DNA of 64,000 bases from Thalia democratica. Taxonomy: Eukaryota. Under the pieces are notes generated by a model, which worked only from the letters and a program-made list of their open reading frames with translations, searched no databases and was not told the DNA's origin. Of the stretch, positions 23,701 to 54,530 are shown piece by piece (positions within the stretch are counted from its first letter, which is position 1; every line of letters starts with the position of its first letter). Made by a program: the position numbers and the translations under genes. Where the stretch lies: the NCBI GenBank assembly GCA_965202585.1, contig OZ241829.1:24552001-24616000 (forward strand), given 5' to 3'.

Positions 23701-23960
23701 ACCTTAATTCTTTTCATTTTTTAAAAGATCGCTGTTTTTCTGTGGAAATAGATAATTCTTATACTTTTTAAAGCAATTCCTTAGCGAGAGATATTTGTCT
23801 TTCGCAGCATTGCTTATTTATTTTATCCTAAACTTTGTATTACTTTTAAACATTTTTACTAAATTTTGAACAAAGTTTTTTAAGTAAGATTTAGCAGCAG
23901 CTAATTATTTTATTATACGGAATTCAGGTCAATTTCTGCTTGTTTTACAATAATTTCAGA
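20760..23960 (-). pseudogene. Decayed tandem copies of an intronless coiled-coil coding unit (left block)
   Basis: Mutually similar segments at about 20880-20990/21410-21480, 21960-22110/23570-23700 and 22830-22990/23190-23350. They translate to fragments such as LKAAKILAAHETRLTDECHQIKYKDLELKMTTILNPL and HEIDVLESNNERQMSFLKKKVEE, with many stops and frameshifts. Confidence 0.55.
22625..22670 (-). ncRNA. Second type I hammerhead motif, same family, degenerate
   Basis: Minus strand reads CTGACGA GATTCAATAAGAAC GAAA CAAAG GTC, about 28/33 identical to the core at 18882-18914; stem I poorly paired. Confidence 0.55.
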
Positions 23961-26900: not shown

Positions 26901-29900
26901 TCATTAGATAAATTATTAGTTTAGGTATTCATGATAAAAAATGTATCTTTTTTTTAAAGTCTATAAGTACTTCATTAAATTATATACTTTTTGCAATTTG
27001 AGGTTATATTCAAAATCTTAAGCAGTATATCATATACAGATAAGTTTTATTTCTTTTATTAATGATTCTATTTTGCAAGTAAGTATTTAATGTTTTTGTT
27101 AGTGCTATTCTAGTTTAACTAAATTAGTGAAAGTACATGTTTTGTTAACTTGATTTTTAAAACTTAAAGTTATTTATTAACATAATACAGTATAAGTTGA
27201 AACAAAAGCATTTTATCAGATTATGGTAAATATATTACACTTTGAAATTTAGGCAATTTGTTAAACTTTGTTATGTAAGTCTTGAAAGTTAGAAAAAATT
27301 AAGATGAATTTTTAATTAGATGATATTGTTTCTTTATTTAATTGTGTCTTCAGATAAATATTTTGATTTAAATATAATTGTTACATTTCTTTATACTCAT
27401 GGTGTATAGAAATTTTATAGAAATTTATAACTTAAAATTTTATAATCATGGATAGCCCAAAGAAACGAAAAATTGATTTAGCATGTCGAGTATTCAATAA
27501 AGACTGGATGTCAAGGTATTTCTTTACACAAGTTGGAAACAATGCAGTTTGTTTGCTGTGTAGTCAAACTGTTTCTGTAAATAAAAAATACAACGTAAGT
27601 CGTCATTATCGACTCAAACATCTTGACTATGGAAAGAATTTGTCAGTAGAGGAACGGGAAGCTAGAGCAAAAGAGCTTGACAAAAAACTAGCAAGACAGC
27701 AAAATGTTTTTTTAAAAAGTAAATCAGCCGAGGAAGCTTCAACTCGCGCCAGTTTTTTGGTTTCATACAACATTGCTAAACATTGTAAACCATTTAGCGA
27801 TGGTGAGTTTTTTAAAAAGTGTATGCTTGATGTGGCTGATGAAGTCTGTCCCCAGTCCAGAAAGAAGTTTGAAGGAGTGAGTTTGTCAAGACGAACTGTT
27901 GCTCGCCGCATTGAAGCTATTGGTGAAGACCTGACTTCACAATTTAAAATGCGTGTACCTTCATTTCGGTATTTTTCATTGGCATTAGATGAGAGTACAG
28001 ACATTGGCGACACTGCACAGCTGCTTGTCTTTGTGCGAGCAATTTCAGAAAATTTCGATATCACAGAAGAATTGCTGTCAATGAAAGGCACAACTACTGG
28101 GAAAGATATTTACCAATGTGTGGAGAATGCAATTTGTAAAATGAACTTATCATGGGAGAATATGGTAAGTGTCACTACAGATGGCTGTCCAGCACTAACA
28201 GGAAAAAATGTTGGCTTGCTAAAAAGACTTAGTGACAAAGTTGCAGAGGTTGGCTGCGGAAAGGAATTGATATTTTTACACTGCATAATACACCAGGAGG
28301 TGTTATGTAGAAAAGTTCTCAAAATGCAGCATGTAGTTAATCCAGTTGTAAAGATAGTTAACTTCATTAGAGCAAAGGGGCTCAATCACAGGCAATTCAA
28401 AACGCTTCTCGAAAATTCCGACTCTGACCACAATGATATTCCATATCATACAGCTGTACGCTGGTTGAGTTTAGGTAAAGTTTTGGACCGCGTTTGGGAA
28501 TTAAAACCGCAAATACGACAATTTTTAGAGATAAAAGGTAAACAAAACGATTTTCCTCAGTTCGAAAATACGGAATGGCTTTCAGATTTTGCATTCATGG
28601 TTGACTTGTTTGGGCATATGAACGAGCTGAATACCAAACTGCTGGGGAAAGATACTTTTGCCTATGAATTGTACTTCGTAGTAAAGGCATTTAGACTAAA
28701 GTTAAAACTTTTCTCTCGTCATCTCAATGAGAACAACTTTACCCATTTTGCAAAACTTGAGACTACAGAACCATCAGTGATTACAATGAAAAAGTATAAC
28801 AACATCATAGTCTCACTTGATAATGAGTTTGGCCGTCGTTTTGCGGACTTTCAACAACTTAGTGAAGAGTTTGACATAGTGTCATCACCATTGACGTTTG
28901 ACACCGAAAATGCACCTGGTAATGTACAGTTAGAACTAATTGAACTACAATGCGACAGTACACTAAAAGAAAAGTTCAAAACTGAACGAATTGACAGATT
29001 TTATGCCTTACTGAACAAGTCAAAATTTGTTAATTTAAAAAAGATGGCAATGAAGTTACTTGTTCTGTTTGGTTCTACATATATTTGTGAACAAACATTC
29101 TCAACCATGAATATAAACAAGAGTAAGCTGCGCTCTAATCTTACTGATTCGAACCTTACTGAGAATTTCTACTTCTAACATATTACCAGATATTAAGCAA
29201 CTTGTCAAAAACTTTGATGATCCACAAATGTCTCATTGACTTCTTTTTCGTGTAACTATTCTTGCTAAAATATTCAAACTTTACATTAAAAATATTATGT
29301 GACAGTTTTAGGTGTTAGTTTTTCGTTTATTAATATTTTCTTAACGAAATTGATCTTAATCTGAAAGTCTGTTAAATTTTAATGTTTATCATGTTAAAAA
29401 TATTAACTAACCTATTTTCATTTTATTATTTCGTTATTTTATGTTAATACTTTTGTAAAAGTATTTTAGATGCAATGTTTGATAGCATTATTTTTTAAGT
29501 ACAGAACTTTGTTAAACTACATAAGTTGTTCAAAACTGTTTTATATTTTGAAAGTTAAGTATTAAAATTTTAAGTTAAAGTAATTTTTATCTAAATTTAA
29601 CTGTTTTGTAAATAAGTTGGTATAAAAATTTAAATCAAACATATAATTTTATTTGCTCTTAGTAGATTTTTAGATAGATTTTATGTACAATTGAGCAAGC
29701 TAAAGTTTGTCAACTTCACAAGATGTCCATGAAACCAGTTGTTTTGTTCGAGACTTCATACATTTGAAGACAAACATTTCCGACCTTAGACATCTTTAAG
29801 GATAAGCTAATTTCATACCGAATCAGTATTCCAGTGCACTTGCAGATTTTTCCAAACCGTCATGCAACTTCTAAACAACTCTAATAGATTATCAACCTTA

Positions 29901-36631: not shown

Positions 36632-37497
36632 TTAAAAGTACTTTTTAAAAATATTGGCAGTAAAATTTTCATCTGCAAATGGTAAATTTTTGCCTTTTTT
36701 AATTGTTTCGAGCTCCAGATTAAAAATTTCAACAGAATCTGTAAAAGTATCTTTTATAGGTAGATCAATATTTCCCCCCATAATGTAAACAAGATTTCTC
36801 AGTCTTGCAACAGCGAAACCGGTTCTAGCTACGTGGAGCTTCGTCTCTATAGTCTGTATTTCACCTGTTATTGTATCGAACTTTTCTATAGAATCTGTTA
36901 CCTTTTCATTTTCTAGCCGGCCTCCAATGATGTAAATAAAGTTTTTATACGCCACAGCTTGGGGAAGGTTTCTTGCTCTTTCCAGCTTAGCACCAATGAC
37001 ACTCCAAGTTTGCGTCTTCCTGTCAAACTTTTCAATTGTGTTTAAACAGCCGTAGCCGTCGTCACCCCCAATTGCAAATATGTCGCCATCTTCGCTTTTG
37101 ACCATGACATGCTCATTTCTCGCTTTAGTTAAACTCCCCACTTGCGTCAAAGTGTCGTGGTTGGTGTCGTACAGATAAGTCGTCTCATTTGCGTTAGACC
37201 AATCATTGCCACCGGAAATAATAAAACTGTCACTATCATACTGACAAATTCCGATGTTTTGTCGAAAAAATCCCAAGGGACTAACTGCACTAAAAGTTCT
37301 GGTCGCCTGGTCAAATCTATCTACATCATCATACGTATTTATATTTCCTCCTACAATGTATACTCCGTTTTTCATTGCAACGGAACCATGCCCTCGTCTA
37401 GGATTGGGTAGATTTTGTATATTTTGCCATGTTTCGCTCACGAGTGAATACGAATAAACAGCGTCACAGTGATAGTAACCGCCGACAAGCAATATTT
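36632..37497 (-). CDS. Kelch-repeat beta-propeller terminal exon (about 6 blades)
   Basis: 288 open codons after acceptor tcacag, with repeated GG..Y/F and W blades (LVGG, IVGG, ISGG, AIGG, IIGG, IMGG); phase 1, like the upstream sushi exons. Confidence 0.9.
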
Positions 37498-40022: not shown

Positions 40023-40159
40023 CTTTCACGCATTTTCCAAAAGTGTTGTCGAAGACGCCATTTTTACAATTGGATTTTTCAAAGTGTAGTAATACCCGTA
40101 CTGGCAAACATACTTCACACTAGTTTCGATCTGATGGTTTGAACTAATGGTGATAGTTG
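40023..40159 (-). pseudogene. 3' part of a sushi/CCP exon split by the provirus (5' part at 53914 to about 53965)
   Basis: Joining the flanks gives CSPEYISWPIIPTITISSNHQIETSVKYVCQYGYYY. A 7-nt deletion relative to the 37989 paralog then shifts the frame to CKNGVFDNTFGKCVK, followed by donor gtaaaa. Confidence 0.7.
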
Positions 40160-41480
40160 TGTAGGACACTTGTGCAAAATCTTATTTTGCCTTGTGTCCA
40201 AATTTTTATAATTTAAAGGAATTAATGTTTTTCACTTGATATTATATTTTTTTTTCCTTAAAAAAGAAAACATTGAATAAATATAGTAAAACTGTTTTCA
40301 AATAAAAAAACTATTTTTCACAAACAAAATAAGTGCTAGTTAAAATGATTGTTGTCTTTGATTTCTTGATTAAACTGGAAATTGCTGTTCATGGGTGTGG
40401 CTAAGGGAAAATGAGAGAATAAAATGAGAGATCAAGTGATCTACAGTCCAAAGTCCAGGAAAATGAGAGAATCAAATGAGAGATCGCGTGATTTATGGAA
40501 AATTCTAGAAAAAGAATTCAAAATCTATAAATACGCTCAATCAGAGCATGAAGCGGGCAATCCACCACGAAACAAGCAAGAAGCGACACTCTGCTCCGCA
40601 AAAGAAATAACATCGTCAATCTTCAAGCAAGAAGATTTCAACAACCATCTAATCGAAGAAGCCCACGCATTCTGTGGCATCGAGAATTTCAGTACTGGTA
40701 GTACTCTTTCATCAAACACTCTAAGTTGGACTCAACGATCGAGTCACAGCGTTCAATCAAGTTAAAGTATACATTCATCTCAGCAAGCAAACCCACACAG
40801 ACTGGGCGCCAACCTTAGCTACACTTCAACGAACAAGTTGTTTCATACTGTTTGACTCTATCGTATTGTTTATATATTCATATTATCATATATACTCACT
40901 ATTGTATTTGCATTGTAATATTTATATATATTTATATCACCGCATTTATTCACTATTGTATTTGTATTGTATTAATTATACATATTGATATCATCGTGCT
41001 TATTTTTTATCGTATTTTATCGCCGCTCTGCTTACGGAAAGGAAAAGAAACAGACCACGCTACGTCTAGCCAGATTCTGCAAACGAGACGGACCAACGTC
41101 GAGTGCCAGAAGCTGAGCGAACGAGACCAGTGACACGCCAAAGGGGGAATCCGGAGCGCGGTTCCTTCTATTTGTTAACATTAAGTGTCTAAACTTATTG
41201 TGAGCTGTCATTGCGTATTTGTACATAATAAACCAACATTATTTAGTTTCATTATATTTAGTCAAATATATATAAATATAAATAAAGTTAAATATAAATT
41301 ATATAATTATGTCCTTAAAACCCTTAAAAAAGGCATTAGTCCTGAAGGTACCCAGGACTCGGTCCAGAACCGAGATAAGTTGTTCCGAGACTATTGCTAA
41401 CCTGGAATCCGATGAGATTGTTGAGACTGAAACCGAGGCAATTGCGAAGGAAACCAGTGAGGCTCCTAGTCTGGGTAACA
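40160..41480 (+). repeat. 5' LTR (1321 bp)
   Basis: TG...CA ends; no difference from 52593-53913 in the stretches compared, and all internal ORFs translate identically; TATATAAA at 41269, AATAAA at 41227 and 41281. Confidence 0.95.
40424..40765 (+). CDS. 113-aa ORF inside the LTR (U3), function unknown; duplicated at 52857-53198
   Basis: Open frame in a GC-richer LTR segment, overlapping a 52-nt tandem duplication; no recognised homology. Confidence 0.35.
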   Translation: MRDQVIYSPKSRKMRESNERSRDLWKILEKEFKIYKYAQSEHEAGNPPRNKQEATLCSAKEITSSIFKQEDFNNHLIEEAHAFCGIENFSTGSTLSSNTLSWTQRSSHSVQSS

Positions 41481-44400
41481 ATAATGGCGTCCTCCGAAGC
41501 GAACATCCGCCGACCACAGAAGACAACACTAAAAAAATTATCGAATTAACTAAATTAGTAGAAAATAGTAACAAACTAATAGAAGATAAATTTAATACTA
41601 TTTTAAAAACAATTTCTATACAGAACTCTCAATCATCGAATATCCCTACAAATACCGAGGTAAGTACAATAAATAATCTTAACTCACATATGAATTTAAC
41701 AGATCCTGAAAAAATACAACCAACAATGACAACAGAGGCGGTATCAACATTACCTACCAACAAAATCCAGACACCAATTCCATTATCAAGCCATGCTTCC
41801 AAATCTTGCACAATACCAAGCAATTACAATTCAATTTTAAACGTTGACCAGTCAAACGAAAGAAATGGAAGTCAACCACAAGATAATAACCAGTCGATTG
41901 CACAGTTACAAAGGCAAATTGACAACATCCAAAAGACAATAAACCAAAATCCTATCCACGAACGTGTAACAACCCAACCTAACACCAACCACATTTTTGG
42001 CAACCACGATCCGATACCCAGAAATCAACACTTCCAGCAAACAGTTAATTCGAGGCTATCAAATAGCATTTCTGATAAAGCATTCAGAAAAATTTCAGGG
42101 GAAAGACCAAGAGAGGAGTTGAGCCTCTTCGAGGTTCAATGTAAAAGCCAAGAAATTTTTGATGATCAAACACAATTTGAGATTATTATCGGAATCTGGC
42201 CAATTAATGACGTACTTTCTTATGTAAAAGCTGGCAAACCATCTAGTTATATCTGTTTTAAACAAGAAATCTTAAGTATGACCCCATGTTTGCCAGACAT
42301 ACTTAAACCTCCACCCATTTGGAGCAGCACTCCAACCTTTAAAGATATCCATCAACTAATATCAAAAGGTCTTACATGCTCTCAAGATGACCTTTACAAA
42401 CATTTGGCACTGATTTATTGCCCGAAATGGGCTAGTAACATTCTAAAAAAAGACCTTGAATTACAAATTGATAAATTCAAAGGTCGGGTTATGTGGACTC
42501 TTGAACAAGGCCCAATTGATTTGAAAACAAATTACAATAATCGAAAATCAAACAACCAGTATAATTTTAATGACAAATTTCACAACGCATTCAATCAACA
42601 ACAAAACCAAAACTTTTCAAATTATAACCAGAACAGATACAATCAAGCACAAAACTATAGACCAAATCTTAACCAGTTTGATAATAAAAATAATAACAGG
42701 TGTAGTTATCACGTTAGGTTCGGTGAAAAATCTAATAATTGTGAAGGCCAACAATGCGATATGTACCAAAAATTTTTAGAGAAAAAATTGAGCTTTCTCA
42801 AAAATAAACCTGCAGCAGTTAACATGTCAATAATACAAGATATTTCGAATGCTGAACAAAGTGAAAATTCCACTCAAGACAAACTAACAAACAGTAATAA
42901 AGTAGATGAATGCATTACTAACGACAGAAAAAATGAGGAAATTAAACAAGAAACAAACAAAATAGATGATAAATTCATTACAAGGAAATTGCCTTATGAA
43001 ACAAAACTAAAAAACAATACTGAACTATTAATAATTGCCGACAATGAAACCTCTGTACAATATCTTTTCGATACGGGTGCAGAAGTTTCGATTATACCCA
43101 AATCCATGGTTGAAACATATGAAAAGGACAAGTCAGCGCCTAATATATGCGACATAAATGGCAAAACATCTAAAGCATTAGGTTATTCAATGAAGTACGT
43201 TAAAATTGGCCTGAAACCGGACCTGCCACATTCTTTCTACGTAATAGACACAGATATTCCTTTCGCAATTCTAGGTTTAGATTTCATAATTAAACATAAA
43301 TTAACAATAATACCACAAGAAAAAACTATTGTACAAGGTGATTCAGGAGTTAAACTGAAATTAAAACAGCTAACTACTCCTGAAACAGAAACGAAAATAG
43401 AAGTAGAAAATCTCCTAAATCTTTTTCCTGAAATCGACAAAGAACCAAACTACAAAGAAAAGCCCAAGCACAACCATGTCTTAGATATAAAACTTGAAAA
43501 AGAATTTTCACCCCGACACCAAAGAGCAAGGAAAACTAACAAAACTGTTTCAAAGGAAATAGAAGATAATTTTGATAAATTACTCAAACAAGGGGCGGTA
43601 ATAAGAGGCATTTCTGAAATAGTCTCACCTTTAACTGTAGTCAGAAAAAAGAACGGAAAGCCAAGGGTATGTGTGGATTACCAATATATTAACCAATACA
43701 CTAAAATAATGAGCTACCCTTTACCAAATATTGACGATCTTTCTTCTATTATACCAGTCAACTCTAGAGTTTTTTCAACACTTGACCTGAGAGAAGCATA
43801 TTTGAATCTTCCCTTAACTTACCGAGCACAAAAAGTAGCAGCCATGATTTCTCAATATGGCACATTTTTGCCGTTAAGAACAACCTTCGGCCTTAAGAAT
43901 GCCCCAATGGCATTCCAAAGGCTTATGGATGACATAATGGCTCCATGCCATAATTTCAGCTTTACATACATAGATGACATTATAATTTATTCGAAATCAA
44001 TGGAAGAACACATGCAACATCTGTTTGAAGTATTGTTTCAACTTAACAAATTTGGATTGCATATCAATAGGGAAAAATGTAAATTCGCCGCTGAAGAAGT
44101 TCAATACCTTGGACACATACTGAGTAGCAAAGGTTTTTATATGCAACAAAGTAAAGTTGAAGCTATCGAAAACTTCCAAACCCCACAAACCATCAAACAT
44201 TTGCGGTCCTTTCTTGGCTGTCTAAACTACTACAACAAATTCGCTCCGAAACTGGCAGAAATACTACAACCATTATATAAATTAACAACAGGAGAGCCAA
44301 AAAATTCTAGAAAAAAGTTAATCTGGGAAACTGAACACCAAGCAGCATTTGAAAAAGCTATACAAACACTAGTTTCGGCCACTCATCTTTCTTATGAAGA

Positions 44401-46906
44401 CCCAAAAAAAGAACTAGTTCTTTCTACAGACGCATCCTCTACTCATATTGGAGCCGTCCTAGAACAAAAGCATGAACCAGGAATTTATAAACCCTTGGCA
44501 TTTTTTTCAAAAAAACTACCAGTCCTTAAATCAGTAAGATCCGTATTTTTCAGAGAACTCACAGGTCTTTACCTGAGTATTAAACATTTTAAGGTCAGAA
44601 TCATAGGAAGACAGCTTCGGGTAAGAACAGACCATAGAGCCTTGGTAGATGCTATTAACAATGCTACGGGAAATCATTCACCAAAAGAAGAAAAATATAT
44701 TGCTATAATAAAAGAATATGCCCCCTTGATGGAATTTATTCCGGGCGATCAAAATACAACAGCTGACTTATTAAGCCGTCCGGTACTCGTTGCATACAAC
44801 GATAAAAACTCAGAAGAAGAGGAAGAAAACAGTGGAGAAATTGATGTTAACGATAAAACAATAAATTCTTACACAAATTATGATTTAGACCAGTATTTCA
44901 CACAAGATGAATCAGAATCTAATCAATTTATTCCCTTAAATATTCAGATAATTTCAGAAACGCAAAGTCAAGCCAATGTACATTTACCTACCGTCATAGC
45001 AAACTCTCAAAAGCAACAAAACCAGATCATTTTTGAGTCTAGATTGATAGATAATTGTGTAGTACAAGGTATCATTGAAACAAAAACCCATAGTTTTCGT
45101 ATATGGGTTCCGCCCAAATTAAGATCTAATATCCTAAATCAAAATCATAACATCTTACACCAAGGAATTGATAAAACTTTAACAGCAGTAGGATCTAATT
45201 TCTGGTGGCCAAAAATGAAAAAAGATGTTGAACTCTTTGTAAAAACTTGTATAACATGTCAAAAAGTGAAGGTAAGGAAATATAACAGACCTAAATTAGG
45301 TTGTTACCCAAATTCACTTGGAAGATTTGACTATGTTCATGCAGACTTGGTAGGACCGTTGGTTGAATCTCAAAACATGAAATATATACTTACCATTAAA
45401 GAACGGTATACTGGTCTTTTTGCATCATGTCCCTTACCCAACAAAATGGCAGAGACCGTAAAGAACGCATTTCTCCAAAATTGGATTGGTCATTATGGAA
45501 TACCATGTACAATAGTTACAGATAATGGCAAAGAATTCTTTAACCATCATTTCGAAACTATGTGTTCGGATCTATCTATCAAACATAATCTCACCGCGCC
45601 ATACCACCCTGAAACCAACGGAATGGTAGAAAGACAACATAGAGAGTTAAAAACGGCCTTAAGGACATTGAAGAATAAACTTAACTGGGTGCAACATCTT
45701 CCTATTATCACTCTAGCTCTAAACAATCAGAGCATTGGTCGTAAAGGATTTAGCCCTGCTCAATATACTTTTGGAACACCCTTAAATATTCCTGGAAAGT
45801 TATTCTTTCCGAACACAAACACATTCGAACCTCCTTCATTATTTGAAACAGAGATATTTATAAAAAATATGAAAGAATTTACTAGAGAGTGGAGAAACCC
45901 AGACGAAGCTACAACATATATCGAAAAACATCTACATGAAGCAAAACAAGTTCTAGTAAAAAATCACACAAGACATTCACTAGATCATTTGTACAAAGGC
46001 CCTTTTAATGTAATAGAACGAGGTCCGCATTCTTTCATAATTGACCAAGGATCAGAATTTAAAAAAATTGCTATTGGAAATTTGAAAGCATATTTTCCTA
46101 GATATCCAACTGCAAGTAGGGACAGATCTGAAAATACTAACTATAATTTGAGAGCGAGAAACAAACTCAAAATTAATACAAAATTCAGCATGATGAGCGA
46201 AAACAAACTAAAATATGTTCAACGTCCATTAATCAGAGACAAATCTAATGGGCTACTATATTTAATTGATTCAGGCTCAGATGTTTCCATCATGCCTGCA
46301 CATCTAACTAATTACATAAATTGCGCCAAAACTGATGAAATAAAGAGTTTCTCTGGTCAAACTGAAAGAGCACTAGGGATAACTCAAGCTAACATTAACA
46401 TCGGTATTCCCAAACTATACTCCTACGAATTTTCAGTTTTTCCCAATGGGCACAATTTTGCAATTCTGGGACTAGATTTCATAAATCAATGGAATATCGT
46501 TATTGCTATAGCTGCAAACGCGATTTTTCATGTCAATGGCAACGATTCGCCAATCAGAATAGAAATAGAAAGAAACCATATTGAAAAAATGCAAGAAAAA
46601 CCATTAGATCTTAGGACAGATCGCTCTAAAAATGATAGCAAAATAACAATACCAAAAATGAAAGAATCAATAAAGGAAACAGTTGAAGTTACAAGAATGG
46701 AAAAATATCAAAGTAAGCAAGAAGGTCTTAAAAACCTCTTAACAAAGAAAGTTCGAAAGAAATTTAACCCAAGAGACCAAAAATATAATAACAACGATTT
46801 AATACATAATAAAAAAAACATGTTGCAAAACTTTTTGGAACTATATCCAACTCAGAACTCAACTAGAACAGGACCGCTTCACCAATATTTTACAGCGAAA
46901 TATTAA
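41309..46906 (+). CDS. Gag-Pol polyprotein (1865 aa): Gag with CHCC knuckle, protease, RT, RNase H, integrase, then a second protease domain
   Basis: CsRn1-type knuckle C-x2-H-x9-C-x4-C (42701-42757); PR YLFDTGAEVS (DTG 43070); RT YIDD (43967); RNase H TDAS..REL..TDH..AD; IN HHCC, ADLVGP, TDNGKEF, GMVER and GPF; second PR YLIDSGSDVS (DSG 46268); no stops or frameshifts. Confidence 0.97.
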   Translation: MSLKPLKKALVLKVPRTRSRTEISCSETIANLESDEIVETETEAIAKETSEAPSLGNNNGVLRSEHPPTTEDNTKKIIELTKLVENSNKLIEDKFNTILKTISIQNSQSSNIPTNTEVSTINNLNSHMNLTDPEKIQPTMTTEAVSTLPTNKIQTPIPLSSHASKSCTIPSNYNSILNVDQSNERNGSQPQDNNQSIAQLQRQIDNIQKTINQNPIHERVTTQPNTNHIFGNHDPIPRNQHFQQTVNSRLSNSISDKAFRKISGERPREELSLFEVQCKSQEIFDDQTQFEIIIGIWPINDVLSYVKAGKPSSYICFKQEILSMTPCLPDILKPPPIWSSTPTFKDIHQLISKGLTCSQDDLYKHLALIYCPKWASNILKKDLELQIDKFKGRVMWTLEQGPIDLKTNYNNRKSNNQYNFNDKFHNAFNQQQNQNFSNYNQNRYNQAQNYRPNLNQFDNKNNNRCSYHVRFGEKSNNCEGQQCDMYQKFLEKKLSFLKNKPAAVNMSIIQDISNAEQSENSTQDKLTNSNKVDECITNDRKNEEIKQETNKIDDKFITRKLPYETKLKNNTELLIIADNETSVQYLFDTGAEVSIIPKSMVETYEKDKSAPNICDINGKTSKALGYSMKYVKIGLKPDLPHSFYVIDTDIPFAILGLDFIIKHKLTIIPQEKTIVQGDSGVKLKLKQLTTPETETKIEVENLLNLFPEIDKEPNYKEKPKHNHVLDIKLEKEFSPRHQRARKTNKTVSKEIEDNFDKLLKQGAVIRGISEIVSPLTVVRKKNGKPRVCVDYQYINQYTKIMSYPLPNIDDLSSIIPVNSRVFSTLDLREAYLNLPLTYRAQKVAAMISQYGTFLPLRTTFGLKNAPMAFQRLMDDIMAPCHNFSFTYIDDIIIYSKSMEEHMQHLFEVLFQLNKFGLHINREKCKFAAEEVQYLGHILSSKGFYMQQSKVEAIENFQTPQTIKHLRSFLGCLNYYNKFAPKLAEILQPLYKLTTGEPKNSRKKLIWETEHQAAFEKAIQTLVSATHLSYEDPKKELVLSTDASSTHIGAVLEQKHEPGIYKPLAFFSKKLPVLKSVRSVFFRELTGLYLSIKHFKVRIIGRQLRVRTDHRALVDAINNATGNHSPKEEKYIAIIKEYAPLMEFIPGDQNTTADLLSRPVLVAYNDKNSEEEEENSGEIDVNDKTINSYTNYDLDQYFTQDESESNQFIPLNIQIISETQSQANVHLPTVIANSQKQQNQIIFESRLIDNCVVQGIIETKTHSFRIWVPPKLRSNILNQNHNILHQGIDKTLTAVGSNFWWPKMKKDVELFVKTCITCQKVKVRKYNRPKLGCYPNSLGRFDYVHADLVGPLVESQNMKYILTIKERYTGLFASCPLPNKMAETVKNAFLQNWIGHYGIPCTIVTDNGKEFFNHHFETMCSDLSIKHNLTAPYHPETNGMVERQHRELKTALRTLKNKLNWVQHLPIITLALNNQSIGRKGFSPAQYTFGTPLNIPGKLFFPNTNTFEPPSLFETEIFIKNMKEFTREWRNPDEATTYIEKHLHEAKQVLVKNHTRHSLDHLYKGPFNVIERGPHSFIIDQGSEFKKIAIGNLKAYFPRYPTASRDRSENTNYNLRARNKLKINTKFSMMSENKLKYVQRPLIRDKSNGLLYLIDSGSDVSIMPAHLTNYINCAKTDEIKSFSGQTERALGITQANINIGIPKLYSYEFSVFPNGHNFAILGLDFINQWNIVIAIAANAIFHVNGNDSPIRIEIERNHIEKMQEKPLDLRTDRSKNDSKITIPKMKESIKETVEVTRMEKYQSKQEGLKNLLTKKVRKKFNPRDQKYNNNDLIHNKKNMLQNFLELYPTQNSTRTGPLHQYFTAKY
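41485..41496 (+). promoter_or_regulatory. Primer-binding site (tRNA-primed)
   Basis: TGGCGTCCTCCG, 4 nt after the LTR end; complementary to a tRNA 3' end ...GGAGGACG-CCA; tRNA identity not determined. Confidence 0.7.
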
Positions 46907-48941
46907 GCAAATCATGGTTGGTTTTCACAACAAACGTAAAAAAGTTTTTTTTAAAAATAAAAAAATATAATAAATAGCTAATATCAACGTTTTAAAATTC
47001 AAATAGATTCTTTTAATTAGCTTTTATTTAATTAATAATAATTATTTATTAACTAATTAATTCGTTTTTTTTTTTTTTGTTTTTGTTTTTTTTTTAACTT
47101 AATTGAAAGACATGATAAAACAAAGGCTTAATATAACAATACGGGTTGGAAACTAATAAATAAAGGAATCCAAAACATCACACTTAACAGTCATAACGAT
47201 CATTTACACTTTGCTTCGTACAATTAAGATTATATCGATAAATTAACTAATAGCATTTTTTTTTAACAATCAAAAACTTTATGTATAAAACTATGTTTAA
47301 AAAAAATATATAAACATAAAACTAAATAATTTAAATAAAAAGTATTAAAAATAATAAACAACAAAAAGAACAAAAAAAAATATATATATATCTAAATATA
47401 AATATATATTATATATAAAATATATCTGAATTCTTAAACTAACACCAAAATTTATGTACAAACACGCTTTTACTTTTTCTCAATGCATATTGGTACTACT
47501 CCATCTAAAGCGAATGACTAAATGCAGTAAACTTAGTGTGTACATACTAAATGTAAAGAAAAATCGTTTTTCTATTTTTTCTCTATTTAGCTTCACTTCT
47601 GTTATTTTTATCTTTCCCGTGCACCTGTAATTAATTTTAAATTGACATTTTTGTGTTATTATAGATAAATTTAGTAGCTAAACAAGGGAATCATGTTTAC
47701 GACACACCTGCAAAACAAACTTAACTATTAGGGTTAAATTCTTTCGAATGAACTCGCTTTAAATTTTATTAAACGTTTCCCAATTTGAATCGCTACACGT
47801 GCTTCGTTACATTGATGCACGTGTCAATAAAATCAGAAGGGCTTAAAGACTCCCTTTAACGCTTTGTTACTATCGTTAATTCTAAAATTAAAACTTAATA
47901 GCACTTGTGAACAAATTGGTAAACGTTTCTTATCTTTTTTTCTTTCGAGTTATAACTTTCATTCACTGAAACAAGATTTATTTCAGATTTGTATTCATTT
48001 AGAACAGCTTTCATTAGAATATGTAACTCAATCTTATAATTGTAAGTTTAGATTATGTGTTTTTGCTTCTTAGTTTGTTAATTTTTTTAAAATAAACAAA
48101 AGTTTATTTTTGTAAAAATAATTCTGTGTTTATTCTTTTTTCGAAATTAATAGTTGTGTTAATCATAATCAAATTAGTTGCCAGATGTATGTTATTTTGA
48201 TTTTCGTTATTAAAAGTATGCATTATTACTTTTTGTCTTCGTTTTTTCTTTTCACTTTGTTTATCAAACACAGATTATAATTGACATTAAATATATCCAC
48301 TGACTATTTGAATTTTAATTTACTCTACAACTTTTTTTTCTTTCTTTCCGCTTTCCACCAATCAATTGTCCCATCTTCATAAAAAAAAACAATACTTAAA
48401 ACATGAATTATATATTTATACACCCTTAAAAAGAAACTTAATAGTAATAATTGTGGAATTAAGTAAATAAAAAATTATCAAATTAGTAATACATAATTAA
48501 TTATCAAAAATAAAGATATCTATAAATATACAATAATAATTATAAAACCTCGTAGTGAATATTTTGAACAATAACCAAACAAAATACGCGTAATATCAGA
48601 CGATATCTCAAAATGACTACCAAGTTAATCAAACCAAACTCAATTAACCATAAGTATAATAATTTGTTTATGTAATTCCTGACCAATACATTTCAGAACA
48701 GCATTCAAAATGCATGTGTAATCTATCCAATTAATTCAGCTTAGCAACCTTCAGTCATCATCACTATTAAATAAACACTAAAAAGAACTAATATTCGGCG
48801 TTATGCCGTACATTTTGTTGATTATACATGCATTTATACAAATACACTATACACATAATTGCCTTGCCACATATCGCATAAAAACATTATTAACAAAGCT
48901 AATAACAAACTAATATTTTCCAGATTTAGCTTTTAATAATT

Positions 48942-50765
48942 ATGAAGTTATTCTTTCTCAATATAAGTCTGTTTGCCTGTCTTTTCTTTCTTGGAGACAA
49001 CGTTTTTTGTCAATCTAATAAAACAATCTTAGACCTAAGATTTCAAAATGTAGACATATGCTTCGATAAGCATATTGTAAAAACTTACTTTATAACTCCT
49101 TCAATCGGAGGTTGCGCTGAACCGGACACAACTTACCAAATAATTAAAGATATTAATATATACCCTCCTGCAGATACGACAATACACATAAACGCAATAG
49201 CGTGCAGAGAGGTCGTGTCCACGTATAAAAACATAATGTGGTGGACTTTCACAAAAACGTCTACATTAATAAATAAAAGGTCTTTTTCAGTCGCAAGCGA
49301 TCGCTGTGTAAGGTGGGTTAAGCAAAGAACTGACCCAATTCTTGGGGATCTATTTAAACATTCAATAACTCCTCATACTTATGTTACACTGAACAAAAAA
49401 CAAAATATTTTTTATTATCTTCAGGGAGTGACTGAGAATGTTAGAAACGCACAAACTTTAGAAACAACCCTAATCTTTAATAGACAAACCCTAACAGGTA
49501 GCCATTTTACCACGTCAGACTTAGAATGTAATGTTTTAAAGGGGGTATGTATTTCCAAGACTGACACATTCTTATTCACTCCTTTTGAGAATAAATGTAA
49601 AACTTGGAAACCATATAAAGGGTTATCTTTACTTAAATACAACATGAAAAATGGAAACCTTTATCAGGTTCCTGAACTAGACCTTGCGTTTCATAGGTTA
49701 ATACCTTGCCCTGAATATGTACACAAATGCATTAGAGAAGTCGATGAAAATAAACAAATAAGGTGTACACCCACAAATTTTGCCCTTAGTTTTTCAAATA
49801 TTTCGACGCTAGTAGATGATAACTTAAAAATAAAACTAAACCAATATAATAATATAAGTGCACGAGACAATATATTAAGTCAAGCTATTCAATCTTTAGC
49901 CATTAAAACAAATTCAGCCATAGAAAAGCTCGCCCAAGAGTTCTCAAGTGTGCTGTGCAAATTGGGTGAAATCTCAATAACCAACTTGCGCAACACCCAA
50001 TATCGCAAACCCAGTGAGACTTTGAGTCTCATGCTGGGCAGGAAAGTTAAGGCAACTATGATAGGTGAGTTACTTGCACAAATTTCGTGCACCAAAGTAA
50101 ACGCAACCTTAGTACCAACTCTACGTATCGGCGATGAAATGTCTCCAAGGCCTCTATTTAGGATTCATTTCGCAAACGAGTCAAAAATAGCACAATACAC
50201 TTCGGAGGGCTATTTAAGATGGGGTCTCAAAGGCTTAACCTCTCATTTAACTGAACAAGTAACCATATTTGTAATAGAAGGAATCGCCATAGCGTTTAAA
50301 AATGGGTCTCTCTTAAATGAACTGCCTGAGATAAATAAATTAGGGCTTCATCCTACTTCTGTTATTCCTGATTCTATAGACTATGATGAAGGAATACTTT
50401 TAAATGAATTATCTACTGCGTCAGACCCAAATAATTTGGGTTCAATGAACCACATGCTGCAAAGCATACTGGGAATCACTTCTGAGCATCTTATAGCTAA
50501 TGGGGTAAACAAGGAGCTGTTAAATAAATATTTGACTGTCCCTATGAATAAAAATGAACATCTGTCCTTCATTAAAGAAATTAAACAATTCTTCCGCCCC
50601 AAAGTTTCTAACATTATAAAAAAAATCGCTCTATTCGGATCTTTAACAATCACCTTTCTAACTACGCTCTTAATAACGTATATCTTTTGTGGATTTACAC
50701 TTAAAGCTATTATTAAGAGTACCAGAACAAAAACAAAAAATAATAAAAATGAAAACCAGAGTTAA
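48942..50765 (+). CDS. env: Envelope glycoprotein (607 aa), class III fusogen-like (herpesvirus gB / chuvirus G type)
   Basis: N-terminal signal peptide, Cys-rich ectodomain with several NxS/T sequons, C-terminal TM and basic tail. KPSETLSLMLGRKVKATMIGELLAQISCTKV...PRPLFRI parallels the gB segment NP..IAS..GR.V.A...GDV..VS.C..V...SRPLV.F. Aromatic loops IMWWTF and IFYYL. Confidence 0.8.
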   Translation: MKLFFLNISLFACLFFLGDNVFCQSNKTILDLRFQNVDICFDKHIVKTYFITPSIGGCAEPDTTYQIIKDINIYPPADTTIHINAIACREVVSTYKNIMWWTFTKTSTLINKRSFSVASDRCVRWVKQRTDPILGDLFKHSITPHTYVTLNKKQNIFYYLQGVTENVRNAQTLETTLIFNRQTLTGSHFTTSDLECNVLKGVCISKTDTFLFTPFENKCKTWKPYKGLSLLKYNMKNGNLYQVPELDLAFHRLIPCPEYVHKCIREVDENKQIRCTPTNFALSFSNISTLVDDNLKIKLNQYNNISARDNILSQAIQSLAIKTNSAIEKLAQEFSSVLCKLGEISITNLRNTQYRKPSETLSLMLGRKVKATMIGELLAQISCTKVNATLVPTLRIGDEMSPRPLFRIHFANESKIAQYTSEGYLRWGLKGLTSHLTEQVTIFVIEGIAIAFKNGSLLNELPEINKLGLHPTSVIPDSIDYDEGILLNELSTASDPNNLGSMNHMLQSILGITSEHLIANGVNKELLNKYLTVPMNKNEHLSFIKEIKQFFRPKVSNIIKKIALFGSLTITFLTTLLITYIFCGFTLKAIIKSTRTKTKNNKNENQS

Positions 50766-51170
50766 TGACATTATAATCTGTAGCTCATACTCAATTTCTT
50801 TCTCTTCTTCTCCTTCTTCAAATTCTTTTGATTGATGTAAAAGCTCGCTACTTTTATTCTATTTTCTTGTCTTTATTTGGTATATCAATAAAAAAAGAAA
50901 AATTATACAAAACAATCTTTCTATTCTAAACACTATCTTTGCCATCCTTGACTTGAAGGACCTCTTTCTCATTTTTCTGCATAAGTCTAGATAAAAAGAA
51001 AAAGATAGCCAAAAAATTCTTTTGTTTTTTTTTTTTACAATAAACAAGTTTAGTACCAATCCTTACTACACTTATGAATCGTTGATAATTTATTTTTGCT
51101 TTCTTTTTGTTACTGTAACTATAAAAAAAACATTTGAATTGTCAACAGTCATAAAAAAATAAAAAAAGAG

Positions 51171-51512
51171 ATGAATCTTTTACAAGTAGAAGACCTTGAC
51201 TTTCTGTTGGACGAAGAACTACCTGAATTAAATCATGAAATGGTTGAAAACTTCTTCCGGCCAATCCAACAAGAAGAAGAGTTTGAAAAGGATCTAGGAT
51301 ATGAAAGCGACGAAGAAAATAAGTATACCGAAGAAAGAGAAGCTCCACTGATAGCTCCACCAGTGCCAATCATCGAACAGAATTGGCACCGTTTGAGGGA
51401 TGACGAAAGGATGTTGGATCCCGAGCTTCTAACAATCCTTATCGAAATGATGTTAGAGGCCGAAAGACTGGGAGATAACGTTTTTGAAGAAGTGTATGAG
51501 GGCGACTTTTAA
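51171..51512 (+). CDS. Acidic 113-aa accessory ORF between env and the 3' LTR
   Basis: ATG-initiated, coding-like island in poly(A/T) DNA, roughly one third Asp/Glu; no recognised homology. Confidence 0.55.
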   Translation: MNLLQVEDLDFLLDEELPELNHEMVENFFRPIQQEEEFEKDLGYESDEENKYTEEREAPLIAPPVPIIEQNWHRLRDDERMLDPELLTILIEMMLEAERLGDNVFEEVYEGDF

Positions 51513-52552
51513 AGGAAAGGTATGTGAACATTATACTAAATAAAAGATTTTTTTTTTTAAATTATAATAGTCATAAAAAATTAACATGTTTTTTTTTTTT
51601 TTTTGTTGTTTCTTCCCAAGTATTTTTGTTTCGATAAAAAAATAAAAAATAATAAATAAAAAAAATAAATAAAATAAAAATCAATTAAAAAAAAAAAAAA
51701 ATTATAAAATAAAAACTTATAAACAAAAATATATAAAAAAAAAAAAATAAAAAAAAAAAAAGCAACTTGTTAACAACTTATTTGTCTATATATGTGTGTT
51801 TATTTTTTATTATTATTATTTGTTTTTCTGATTTTTTTTTTTTTTTTTTTTGTGTGTACCTTTGACCTTATAAACTACAATAACTCCAGGTAATTAAATA
51901 ATATTAACATTGATTTGCTTCTATCTATTCACTTTTAACCTTAAGCAATCTAGAATTCAAATCTATTATCAACACGTTTATTTGAGTTGTTACCTTTACA
52001 CATTTTATTACCGAAATCTATCTGAGTAATTCTTTTGAAATACAAAATTTTAATATGACAACGTTGTATACTTATCGAATTAATTTTTTTTTTGAATGTT
52101 TGAACAAGTACATCATTTGAAACAGTTATAAGTTAAACTCAATTTTCTTCTCTCCTTCGTTGTTTAAAATTTTTCATTGTAAACCTGTTTTGTTTCTACA
52201 GTAAATCTTTGATTTTCTAATAATACATTTTTCCATTAAATATTAATATTTCTTAACTAAACAAAATAGAAAAACAAAAAACATTGTTAAAATTGTTATT
52301 TGTACTTTAAATTTATTTGCATTTATCATCTCAACCCTCCGACAACTTGATAATGTACCATTTTTTTTTTAGAAAGATTAAAGTTATAAATTTGAACATT
52401 TTTTTTTTTCAAGCATGATAAACCCGCTCTAATTCCTTATTATTCTTTTCTTTCAAAAGTTATTTTACACTTAGACATTTTAAGTTAATTTTCGTCCCCT
52501 TAATAATAGTTTTTTCTCATAAGTTTTTTTTACAAGTTAATAAAAATTTTTT

Positions 52553-52582
52553 TAGAAAAAGAAAAAAAAAAAAAAAGAAAAA
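52553..52582 (+). promoter_or_regulatory. Polypurine tract
   Basis: AGAAAAAGAAAAAAAAAAAAAAAGAAAAA ending 10 nt before the 3' LTR. Confidence 0.55.
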
Positions 52583-52592
52583 CATAAGTCGA

Positions 52593-53913
52593 TGTAGGAC
52601 ACTTGTGCAAAATCTTATTTTGCCTTGTGTCCAAATTTTTATAATTTAAAGGAATTAATGTTTTTCACTTGATATTATATTTTTTTTTCCTTAAAAAAGA
52701 AAACATTGAATAAATATAGTAAAACTGTTTTCAAATAAAAAAACTATTTTTCACAAACAAAATAAGTGCTAGTTAAAATGATTGTTGTCTTTGATTTCTT
52801 GATTAAACTGGAAATTGCTGTTCATGGGTGTGGCTAAGGGAAAATGAGAGAATAAAATGAGAGATCAAGTGATCTACAGTCCAAAGTCCAGGAAAATGAG
52901 AGAATCAAATGAGAGATCGCGTGATTTATGGAAAATTCTAGAAAAAGAATTCAAAATCTATAAATACGCTCAATCAGAGCATGAAGCGGGCAATCCACCA
53001 CGAAACAAGCAAGAAGCGACACTCTGCTCCGCAAAAGAAATAACATCGTCAATCTTCAAGCAAGAAGATTTCAACAACCATCTAATCGAAGAAGCCCACG
53101 CATTCTGTGGCATCGAGAATTTCAGTACTGGTAGTACTCTTTCATCAAACACTCTAAGTTGGACTCAACGATCGAGTCACAGCGTTCAATCAAGTTAAAG
53201 TATACATTCATCTCAGCAAGCAAACCCACACAGACTGGGCGCCAACCTTAGCTACACTTCAACGAACAAGTTGTTTCATACTGTTTGACTCTATCGTATT
53301 GTTTATATATTCATATTATCATATATACTCACTATTGTATTTGCATTGTAATATTTATATATATTTATATCACCGCATTTATTCACTATTGTATTTGTAT
53401 TGTATTAATTATACATATTGATATCATCGTGCTTATTTTTTATCGTATTTTATCGCCGCTCTGCTTACGGAAAGGAAAAGAAACAGACCACGCTACGTCT
53501 AGCCAGATTCTGCAAACGAGACGGACCAACGTCGAGTGCCAGAAGCTGAGCGAACGAGACCAGTGACACGCCAAAGGGGGAATCCGGAGCGCGGTTCCTT
53601 CTATTTGTTAACATTAAGTGTCTAAACTTATTGTGAGCTGTCATTGCGTATTTGTACATAATAAACCAACATTATTTAGTTTCATTATATTTAGTCAAAT
53701 ATATATAAATATAAATAAAGTTAAATATAAATTATATAATTATGTCCTTAAAACCCTTAAAAAAGGCATTAGTCCTGAAGGTACCCAGGACTCGGTCCAG
53801 AACCGAGATAAGTTGTTCCGAGACTATTGCTAACCTGGAATCCGATGAGATTGTTGAGACTGAAACCGAGGCAATTGCGAAGGAAACCAGTGAGGCTCCT
53901 AGTCTGGGTAACA
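52593..53913 (+). repeat. 3' LTR (1321 bp)
   Basis: Direct repeat of 40160-41480. Confidence 0.95.
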
Positions 53914-53983
53914 ATAGTTGGAATAATGGGCCATGATATATATTCAGGGGAACATGATCAGCAAAGGGGCATGAGGTCATAAT

Positions 53984-54530
53984 TTGAAACTTATATTAGA
54001 TATTCTAGAGTTGCTGATGAAAAGCAGAAAAAAAAGGTAATAGGTATATTTAATGGCAGTTTTGAAACTAACACTAGATATTCTGGAGTTGCAGATGAAG
54101 AGCAAAAAACAAAAAAAAAAAGGTCTTAGATTTTTTTAATGGCACTTTTGAAACCTTCACTAGATATTCTGGAGTTGCAGATGAAAAGCAAAAATCAAAA
54201 AAAGGTCTCAGATGTTTTTAATGGCAGTTTTGAAACTTACTTTAGATATTCTGGAGTTGCAGATGAAGAGTAGAAAAAAAAGGTCTTAGGTTTTTTTAAT
54301 TGTAGTTTTGAAACTTTCACTAGATATTCTTGAGCTGTAGATGAAGAGAGAACACCGAAAAAAAGGTCTTAGATTTTTTTAATGGCAGTTTTGAAACTTT
54401 CAATAGATCTTCTGAAATTGCAGATGAAGAGAAAAAATCAAAAAAAGGTCTTAGGTGAATTTGTTGGTAATTTTGAAACTTACACTAGATATTCTGGAGT
54501 TGCAGATGAAGAGCAAAAAAAAGGTCTTAA
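53984..54530 (+). repeat. About 80-bp minisatellite, 7 copies, inside a truncated hAT-like element ending near 54631
   Basis: TAGAT(A/C)TTCT at 53997, 54075, 54161, 54243, 54321, 54404 and 54486; hAT-like right end AAAGTTCGAGTAACCTTG next to ATCTAGGC; related units at 62480-62560. Confidence 0.75.

Follow-up and report, generated by a model that had tools for sequence, protein, structure and literature searches.

We analyzed a 64,000-nucleotide (nt) stretch of the Thalia democratica genome (contig OZ241829.1, positions 24,552,001 to 24,616,000; hereafter the window), which carries a single long terminal repeat (LTR) element of the Ty3/gypsy type, delimited at 40160-53913 and 13.75 kb long. 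Its gag-pol open reading frame (ORF) of 1865 amino acids (aa) runs uninterrupted on the forward strand (41309-46906), the strand on which all ORFs and domains of the element lie. Besides the canonical protease (PR1), located upstream of the reverse transcriptase (RT), this frame encodes a second retropepsin-like domain, here called PR2, placed after the integrase (IN).

The domains of the polyprotein follow the order Gag, PR1, RT, RNase H, IN, PR2 and tail. PR1 spans aa 573-675 (43025-43333) and is recognized by Pfam at aa 579-667 as gag-asp_proteas (E 6e-12) and RVP (E 1.5e-9). RT and RNase H together cover aa 778-1137 (43640-44719; RVT_1, RT_RNaseH_2, RT_RNaseH), with Pfam positions at aa 778-938 for RT and aa 1006-1137 for RNase H. 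The integrase (aa 1267-1597, 45107-46099; Integrase_H2C2 and rve), through which related proteins align, comprises an H2C2 zinc domain (aa 1267-1322), a core (aa 1345-1456) and a C-terminal GPF/SH3-like module. A strongly conserved linker of aa 1598-1634 (46100-46210), ending in a Met-Met pair, leads directly into PR2 (aa 1635-1751, 46211-46561), whose D-S-G lies at aa 1654-1656 and whose ILGLD lies at about aa 1719-1723. In a structural model the folded domain covers approximately aa 1641-1751 (46229-46561), slightly wider than the 46210-46530 given in an initial annotation of the window that was made from the letters alone. The frame closes with a Lys/Asn-rich tail (aa 1752-1865 plus the stop codon, 46562-46906) that has no Pfam match and evolves near-neutrally. 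Past the SH3-like module of IN, the frame remains free of stops for 268 codons, a stretch in which the other five frames contain 11-27 stops each; since base composition gives a chance of 5e-10 for such a run, the open frame is not due to chance. The base composition of PR2 is that of the remaining pol.

The initial annotation had placed a second retropepsin-type domain in frame downstream of IN; the peptide segments that it cited are present, and BLASTP, hhalign, sub-threshold Pfam matches and an AlphaFold2 (AF2) model agree with it. PR1 and PR2 are identical at 30 of 86 positions by BLASTP (35%, E 1e-13), and hhalign matches two PR2 sequences to three PR1-type sequences over 99 columns (98.2% probability, E 5e-14). 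In Pfam, the full polyprotein is matched in two stretches by gag-asp_proteas and likewise in two by RVP; the C-terminal 264 aa alone match gag-asp_proteas (PF13975) with an E of 6.9e-5 (23.8 bits vs a gathering cut-off of 28.2) and RVP (PF00077) with an E of 0.0067 (17.2 bits vs a cut-off of 20.7). Searches of PDB sequences with PR2 gave weak matches, of which those of protease type were to the HTLV-1 protease, retroviral-like aspartic protease 1 and the Ddi1 RVP domain. The D-(T/S)-G and ILGLD motifs of PR2 are intact, as had been claimed, and are kept in both lineages that carry the domain: that of the window and a sister lineage described below. In an alignment of 55 sequences comprising PR2, PR1 and short retropepsin-like proteins (A1), the D-S-G of PR2 falls on the near-invariant D29 and G31 columns, and the PR2 of the window has 13 of the 13 invariant or near-invariant residues. 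At the 33 columns where the commonest residue has a share of at least 70%, this residue is present 15 times in the PR2 of the window, 14 times in that of the sister lineage and 19 times in PR1.

With alignment A1 as input, AlphaFold yields a model of PR2 with a mean predicted local distance difference test score (pLDDT) of 87.6 and a predicted template modeling score (pTM) of 0.79. Foldseek searches of PDB with this model rank Ddi1 RVP domains first (TM 0.64-0.71), followed by the proteases of XMRV, HIV-1 and FIV, with a probability of 1.00, and a search of BFVD matches viral aspartic proteases. The checks by Pfam and AlphaFold that had been proposed for this segment returned sub-threshold retropepsin matches and a single-chain model with a retropepsin fold. 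PR2 is thus predicted to adopt the retropepsin beta-barrel, and sequence and model taken together suggest that it has the sequence and fold features of retropepsins.

A search with the C-terminal 276 aa found one match only, the P0001 cluster (1964 aa) from Tara Oceans metagenome scaffolds. This sister lineage is 79% identical to the element of the window at the nt level. Over PR-IN, P0001 and the window protein share 84% identity, and P0001 carries PR2 at the equivalent position with the same D-S-G and ILGLD. In the 15 members of the cluster that were read, D-S-G is present in 12/12 copies reaching the site and ILGLD in 11/11 extending past the motif. An 11-kb scaffold of the sister lineage (L003) shows the same order of gag-pol with PR2, spacer, env resembling herpesvirus glycoprotein B (gB) and small ORF. 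On this scaffold, env is split between two gene calls, which amounts to one break. Another metagenome contains L002, a copy that matches the element of the window at 99% identity, covers PR2 and has its gag-pol called as two ORFs, again one break, the alignment having one indel of a length that is not a multiple of three. The initial annotation had made the standing of PR2 depend on its presence in other family members, and the Tara Oceans lineage carries the same layout: a protease after integrase is found in the independent assemblies L001, L002 and L003 besides the window. In P0001, the tail after PR2 (residues ~1750-1964 in L001) is 99 aa longer and contains an internal tandem duplication with a unit of ~45 aa; some members of the cluster are shorter, at 1849 or 1897 aa.

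Searches for further lineages returned none beyond this sister cluster in a second word-indexed protein search on the C-terminal region, in two JGI metagenome scans or in one IMG/VR scan, and HMMER over 1.84 billion cluster representatives gave no match below 1e-30. Among more distant relatives with an alignable IN C-terminus, 0/95 have a protease after IN and the chain continues past IN for a median of 50 aa, in line with the statement of the initial annotation that little normally follows a gypsy integrase. Four database proteins that seemed to offer precedents for a protease after IN (P0129, P0195, P0165 and P0123) were rejected as chimeric gene models, with repeated RT/IN sets or an intervening gag-like domain. 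The IN-PR2 layout is therefore restricted to one narrow lineage made of two sister lineages.

We estimated selection on the polyprotein from the ratio of nonsynonymous to synonymous substitution rates (dN/dS, Nei-Gojobori) between the window and L001. The ratio is 0.044 for RT, 0.061 for IN and 0.087 for PR1 (85% aa identity), rising to 0.13 for the IN C-terminal module and following tail (aa 1561-1634, 81% aa identity). It reaches 0.33 in PR2 (63% aa identity), 0.30 in the linker between gag and PR, 0.38 in that between RNase H and IN, and 0.74 in the tail after PR2 (aa 1746-1865, 39% aa identity). In PR2, 258 nonsynonymous sites carry 54.6 changes and 74.7 synonymous sites carry 35.4 (Fisher p 2e-5), so that selection is purifying and the neutral evolution that the annotation had named as grounds for dropping the domain is contradicted. 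Comparison of PR2 between the lineages shows the same residue at 51 of 66 family-conserved columns vs 20 of 46 variable columns (p 3e-4). Judging from these comparisons, PR2 appears to be maintained as a retropepsin fold, under a constraint clearly weaker than that on the essential enzymes.

The point at which PR2 was added can be read from the nearest relatives that lack it (P0003, P0004, P0005 and P0008; 37-40% identical in Pol). These proteins align up to aa 1618-1624 of the window protein and then end, with 3-17 residues left; aa 1598-1634, now the linker between IN and PR2, are therefore the ancestral C-terminal tail of Pol. PR2 together with the basic, fast-evolving Lys/Asn-rich tail (~240 aa) is thus a lineage-specific extension appended at the old C-terminus. 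Within this extension, the protease portion can be aligned to the protease at the N-terminus of these four relatives. The alignments of two relatives continue to about aa 1790, into the tail after PR2. The possibility that this tail is a copy of the linker between PR and RT was rejected, its matches being insignificant (domain E ~1-2).

In a neighbor-joining (NJ) tree of 142 protease domains, the two PR2 sequences group together in 200/200 bootstraps, within a clade of nine members that also holds the PR1 pair of the element, P0141, P0183, P0132, P0117 and an orphan ORF, P0150. An exclusive grouping of PR1 with PR2 was recovered in 0/200 bootstraps, and counts of shared rare residues do not point to PR1 as the source of PR2. 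PR2 is old, because PR1 and PR2 are 35% identical to each other vs 85% identity for PR1 and 63% for PR2 between the lineages. Of the old duplication kept open that the initial annotation had proposed, the age, the open frame and the purifying selection hold; the origin from the element's own PR1 is not borne out by the tree or by the rare residues. On this evidence PR2 came from a protease of this element group before the split of the window and Tara Oceans lineages, the source being either the element's own PR1 or the protease of a co-resident relative. Short marine-metagenome contigs also contain ORFs that are closer to PR2 than to PR1, at 30-40% identity (L004 939-1367, which is P0150; L006, P0199; L007, P0181). 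P0150 is without the catalytic and G-x-D signatures and has no similarity to IN or gag in the 938 nt upstream, and the PR2-like frame of L007 is broken at least once.

PR2 can be set against several known arrangements. It shares its fold family and signature positions with the canonical Ty3/gypsy (Metaviridae) protease, a single domain of clan AA (RVP/gag-asp_proteas) located between Gag and RT, and is 32-35% identical to its own PR1 and ~25-32% identical to the proteases of related elements. Unlike this canonical protease, it lies at the C-terminus of Pol after the integrase, is additional to PR1 and has a nonsynonymous rate ~3.5 times that of PR1. In the GyDB clan AA survey, retroelement proteases are described as single-domain and no second copy is mentioned. 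The host element resembles the env-carrying Ty3/gypsy "errantiviruses" with an ENV of the HSV gB type that were reported from many animal phyla (PMC13524379, eLife 2026): it has the order LTR, gag-pol, env, LTR and a class III (gB-like) env signal, a weak one in Pfam. The POL scheme in that text is PRO-RT-RNase H-IN with one protease, and a search for terms in the text found no second protease. Relative to the elements described there, the element of the window differs by the extension of Pol with PR2 and a tail, by a 2-kb spacer between pol and env and by a small acidic ORF after env. It otherwise looks like an ordinary member of the gB-env Ty3/gypsy group.

The doubling of an enzymatic domain within Pol, with one copy under relaxed constraint, has a precedent in vertebrate retroviruses and insect errantiviruses, in which RNase H is duplicated (Malik and Eickbush, 2001, cited by PMC13524379). 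In these viruses, the extra RNase H copy has lost catalysis and forms a tether next to the active copy, whereas PR2 keeps its catalytic signature and lies ~970 residues from PR1. The other of the two closest parallels is P0016, a related Ty3/gypsy Pol (33% identical) that likewise has two retropepsin domains: its residues 1-250 hold a tandem pair of proteases at the N-terminus, each of them with D-S/T-G and G-x-D, and 26% identical to each other. These are adjacent and precede RT in a pepsin-like arrangement, an independent event that differs from the IN-PR2 layout. Its occurrence suggests that proteases have been duplicated more than once in this branch of Ty3/gypsy elements. Among solved structures, the closest to the PR2 model is the Ddi1 RVP domain, also a retropepsin domain within a longer chain. 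PR2 is not a Ddi1-type protein, however: it has no Ddi1-type Pfam match, the polyprotein has no ubiquitin-like (UBL), HDD or ubiquitin-associated (UBA) domain, its sequence is nearer to element proteases, and the likeness is one of fold only.

Chromoviruses carry a chromodomain at the C-terminus of IN, with a role in chromatin targeting. The chromodomain may be comparable to PR2 as a lineage-specific module at the C-terminus of a Ty3/gypsy integrase, with a different fold; Pfam lists the chromodomain family PF00385 for unrelated matches only. In a representative protein library, the highest scores for the PR2 query went to P0121, P0125, P0122, P0126 and P0147, proteins built from tandem repeats of retropepsin type that number between 2 and 10 (P0121 has 6 and P0122 has 10). 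P0121, from the cynipoid gall wasp Belonocnema kinseyi, is without a D-S/T-G motif and P0122 has one; P0125 also comes from a cynipoid wasp, Leptopilina boulardi. These proteins look like a family of pseudo-protease repeat proteins.

The IN-PR2 feature is a real, non-artefactual and lineage-specific domain gain. With a confidence slightly above even, we read PR2 as a genuine, translated retropepsin domain retained by selection within the ~240-aa C-terminal extension of Pol in one env-carrying Ty3/gypsy lineage. Several observations weigh against this reading. The Pfam scores of PR2 lie under the gathering thresholds; the AF2 model built from its sequence alone is unusable (pLDDT 30), and the good model hinges on an alignment composed mostly of ordinary proteases. 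Nonsynonymous change in PR2 is ~3.5 times that in PR1 (p 3e-6), and its dN/dS of 0.33 is no tighter than those of the gag-PR and RNase H-IN linkers. The same relaxation is visible among close copies of the sister lineage, where variable aa sites make up 7.2% of PR2 vs 1.9% of PR1 (2.7% of IN and 11% of the tail after PR2). Because the carriers amount to two lineages, the estimate of selection is a single pairwise comparison; with 63% identity overall, that three catalytic residues have survived carries no significance alone.

One retropepsin active site requires two subunits, and integrase acts as a multimer. On these grounds PR2, located directly behind IN, would find its partner in the PR2 domain of another Pol or IN chain upon assembly of the polyprotein, and would become competent only once two such chains meet. 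Pairing would create a second aspartic protease site, spatially separate from the first, at the IN end of Pol. The most economical task for such a site would be a local one, either the trimming of the region formed by IN, PR2 and the tail or another late maturation cut. In this scheme, the dimerization and activity of PR2 are taken over from established retropepsin biology. A mixed PR1/PR2 dimer and the processing of Env or of a host factor, both put forward in the initial annotation, are possible candidates as well; an intramolecular dimer and a part in the timing of maturation were suggested there as further hypothetical roles. That PR2 has catalytic activity and serves as a second protease whose task differs from that of PR1, be it as a PR2 homodimer at the IN end or as an asymmetric PR1/PR2 pair, is a proposal we advance tentatively and regard as doubtful. 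Were it true, this would be the first LTR retroelement lineage known with two different retropepsins in one polyprotein, and an asymmetric pair would provide a living analogue of the step from a dimeric retropepsin to the two-lobed pepsin.

PR2 might instead have kept its fold and dimerization as a noncatalytic scaffold, a multimerization or tethering module for the integrase, comparable to other modules appended C-terminally to IN, in which the catalytic motif is kept only as support for the dimer. Its place directly after IN, where the superfamily usually has short tails only, would suit such a role, as would a moderate constraint concentrated on fold-defining columns and a best structural match to RVP domains that, as in Ddi1, sit within larger proteins. 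We nevertheless consider a noncatalytic PR2 unlikely: D-S-G and ILGLD are retained in both lineages and in every covering copy, and the clearly noncatalytic repeats of P0121 and the orphan P0150 have lost these motifs.

The other main rival, conceivable if rather improbable, makes PR2 a relic carried along as a passenger: a partial duplication in frame, or a product of recombination, was fixed by chance in an active lineage and decays slowly, tolerated because it lies at the very C-terminus. Such a relic would be expected to evolve as PR2 does in some respects, with a dN/dS equal to that of the linkers and ~4 times that of PR1, a near-neutral tail behind it (0.74), a very narrow distribution over two sister lineages and related degenerate pieces that exist as orphans. 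Set against this, purifying selection on PR2 is significant and is aimed at the columns that define retropepsins (the p values of 2e-5 and 3e-4 above). Despite an AT-rich sequence, neither lineage has lost the open frame across a synonymous distance of ~0.75, and although a stop after the tail of IN would cost nothing and delete the extension, none has been fixed.

Capture of PR2 from a retropepsin-like gene of the host (one resembling Ddi1, SASPase or the orphan P0150) rather than from a retroelement protease could explain why Ddi1 RVP domains top the Foldseek ranking, why the weak PDB sequence matches include retroviral-like aspartic protease 1 and why PR2-biased orphan ORFs occur without recognizable element context. 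It is nonetheless very improbable: the best sequence matches are Ty3/gypsy proteases, the element's own PR1 included, the NJ tree places PR2 with PR1 and with PR1-type sequences of related elements, its composition is that of pol, and the Ddi1-type Pfam match and UBL or UBA context are missing. Finally, the idea that the fusion is an error of assembly, or that PR2 heads another element lying nested or in tandem, as in the four chimeric gene models above, is effectively refuted: the junction recurs in the window and three independent metagenome assemblies, gag sequence is absent between IN and PR2, the following 2.4 kb hold no remnant of RT or gag, and one identical LTR pair with its target-site duplication (TSD) flanks a single element.

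No protease after integrase was found in the GyDB clan AA survey and PMC13524379 or in phrase searches of the literature; these searches covered open-access text only, and absence from it is not proof. The IN-PR2 layout thus seems to be previously undescribed, what is new being the position and number of protease domains. Each retroelement is viewed as having a single protease domain, which works as a symmetric homodimer, and an active element that has long kept a second protease at 65% divergence offers a natural test case for this view. It bears on domain gain in Pol, on the division of labor or asymmetric pairing of two retropepsins, and on the staging of maturation. Its practical weight is limited by the two sister lineages in which it occurs, the relaxed constraint and a function that is inferred.

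The element that hosts PR2 has the hallmarks of a Ty3/gypsy LTR element, with TG..CA ends, a TSD, and tracts resembling a primer binding site (PBS) and a polypurine tract, and it is these paired repeats and signals that identify 40160-53913 as one element. Its Pol has the Ty3/gypsy order PR-RT-RNase H-IN, with the H2C2 zinc domain in IN, according to the Pfam positions, and its relatives in databases are named as Ty3/gypsy-type Pol proteins of flatworms, whipworms and spiders. The 5' LTR (TG...CA, 40160-41480) and the 3' LTR (52593-53913) were located by a blastn self-comparison, which pairs 40160-41483 with 52593-53916 over 1324 nt at 100% identity, and their ends were read directly; the exact repeat extends to 41483 since the 3 bases past the LTR end match the TSD by chance. 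The TSD, also read directly, is 7 bases long (40153-40159, with its second copy at 53914-53920). A PBS-like stretch starting with TGGCG was read at 41485-41502, its position deduced relative to the LTR end; it begins four bases past the 5' LTR and lies within the gag frame. The tRNA scan found no tRNA gene in the window that would match it, and neither the Rfam nor the tRNA scan of the window gave any match. Just 5' of the 3' LTR, a purine-rich tract resembling a polypurine tract was read at 52545-52592.

Since the LTRs are identical and the ORFs intact, the insertion is very recent and the copy functional-looking, and from its sequence the host element is young, intact and apparently active. 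The start codon of gag lies ~170 nt inside the 5' LTR, and the frame crosses the LTR end and the PBS-like site (41309-41502). The sister lineage has the same Gag N-terminus, and the terminal ~170 nt of each LTR are therefore coding. Entirely within the LTR lies a further ATG-initiated ORF of 113 aa (40424-40765, and its copy in the 3' LTR), with no significant Pfam match.

Downstream of gag-pol, an AT-rich spacer (46907-48941; 23.5% GC) without any ORF longer than 69 aa separates pol from env; RT or gag remnants were searched for within it and none were found. The spacer is ~2 kb long and noncoding in both lineages, and has diverged between them except for a patch of ~200 nt with 71% identity (47818-48011 in the window, 7458-7651 in L003). 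This patch may serve the expression of env, either in regulation or in connection with splicing. The env-like ORF itself (48942-50765, 607 aa) has a hydrophobic N-terminus and a C-terminal membrane anchor. Its Pfam matches, both below the gathering score, are to Glycoprotein_B (E 9.7e-6; 25.6 bits vs a cut-off of 43) and Monjiviricetes_fusion (E 7e-5), a signal of a class III (gB-like) fusion protein. It shares 81% identity with its counterpart in the sister element, an env that itself has a weak Glycoprotein_B match, and a search of PDB sequences with the ORF of the window gave no match. On the 3' side of env, a small acidic ORF of 113 aa (51171-51512) has no Pfam match and is 46% identical (E 1e-21) to L003 10816-11145; kept in both lineages, it may be an accessory gene.

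The surroundings of the element contain other repeats and host-type sequences. A tandem array with an 82-nt unit (53983-54529; ~6.6 copies, 79% matches) starts 70 nt past the 3' LTR. At 27448-29178, an intact ORF of 576 aa with a Spin-doc-type zinc finger and a weak match to the hAT dimerization domain is a hAT-like transposase or a domesticated derivative. Host-type exons on the reverse strand encode a kelch-repeat propeller (36632-37492; Kelch_1 E 1e-32) and a fragment of a PH domain (4207-4614), and GC content is raised to 45% in the 4-6 kb part of the window. In a strongly AT-skewed region, a direct repeat of 160 nt (82% identical) occurs at 21963-22120 and 23552-23712, its two copies 1.6 kb apart.

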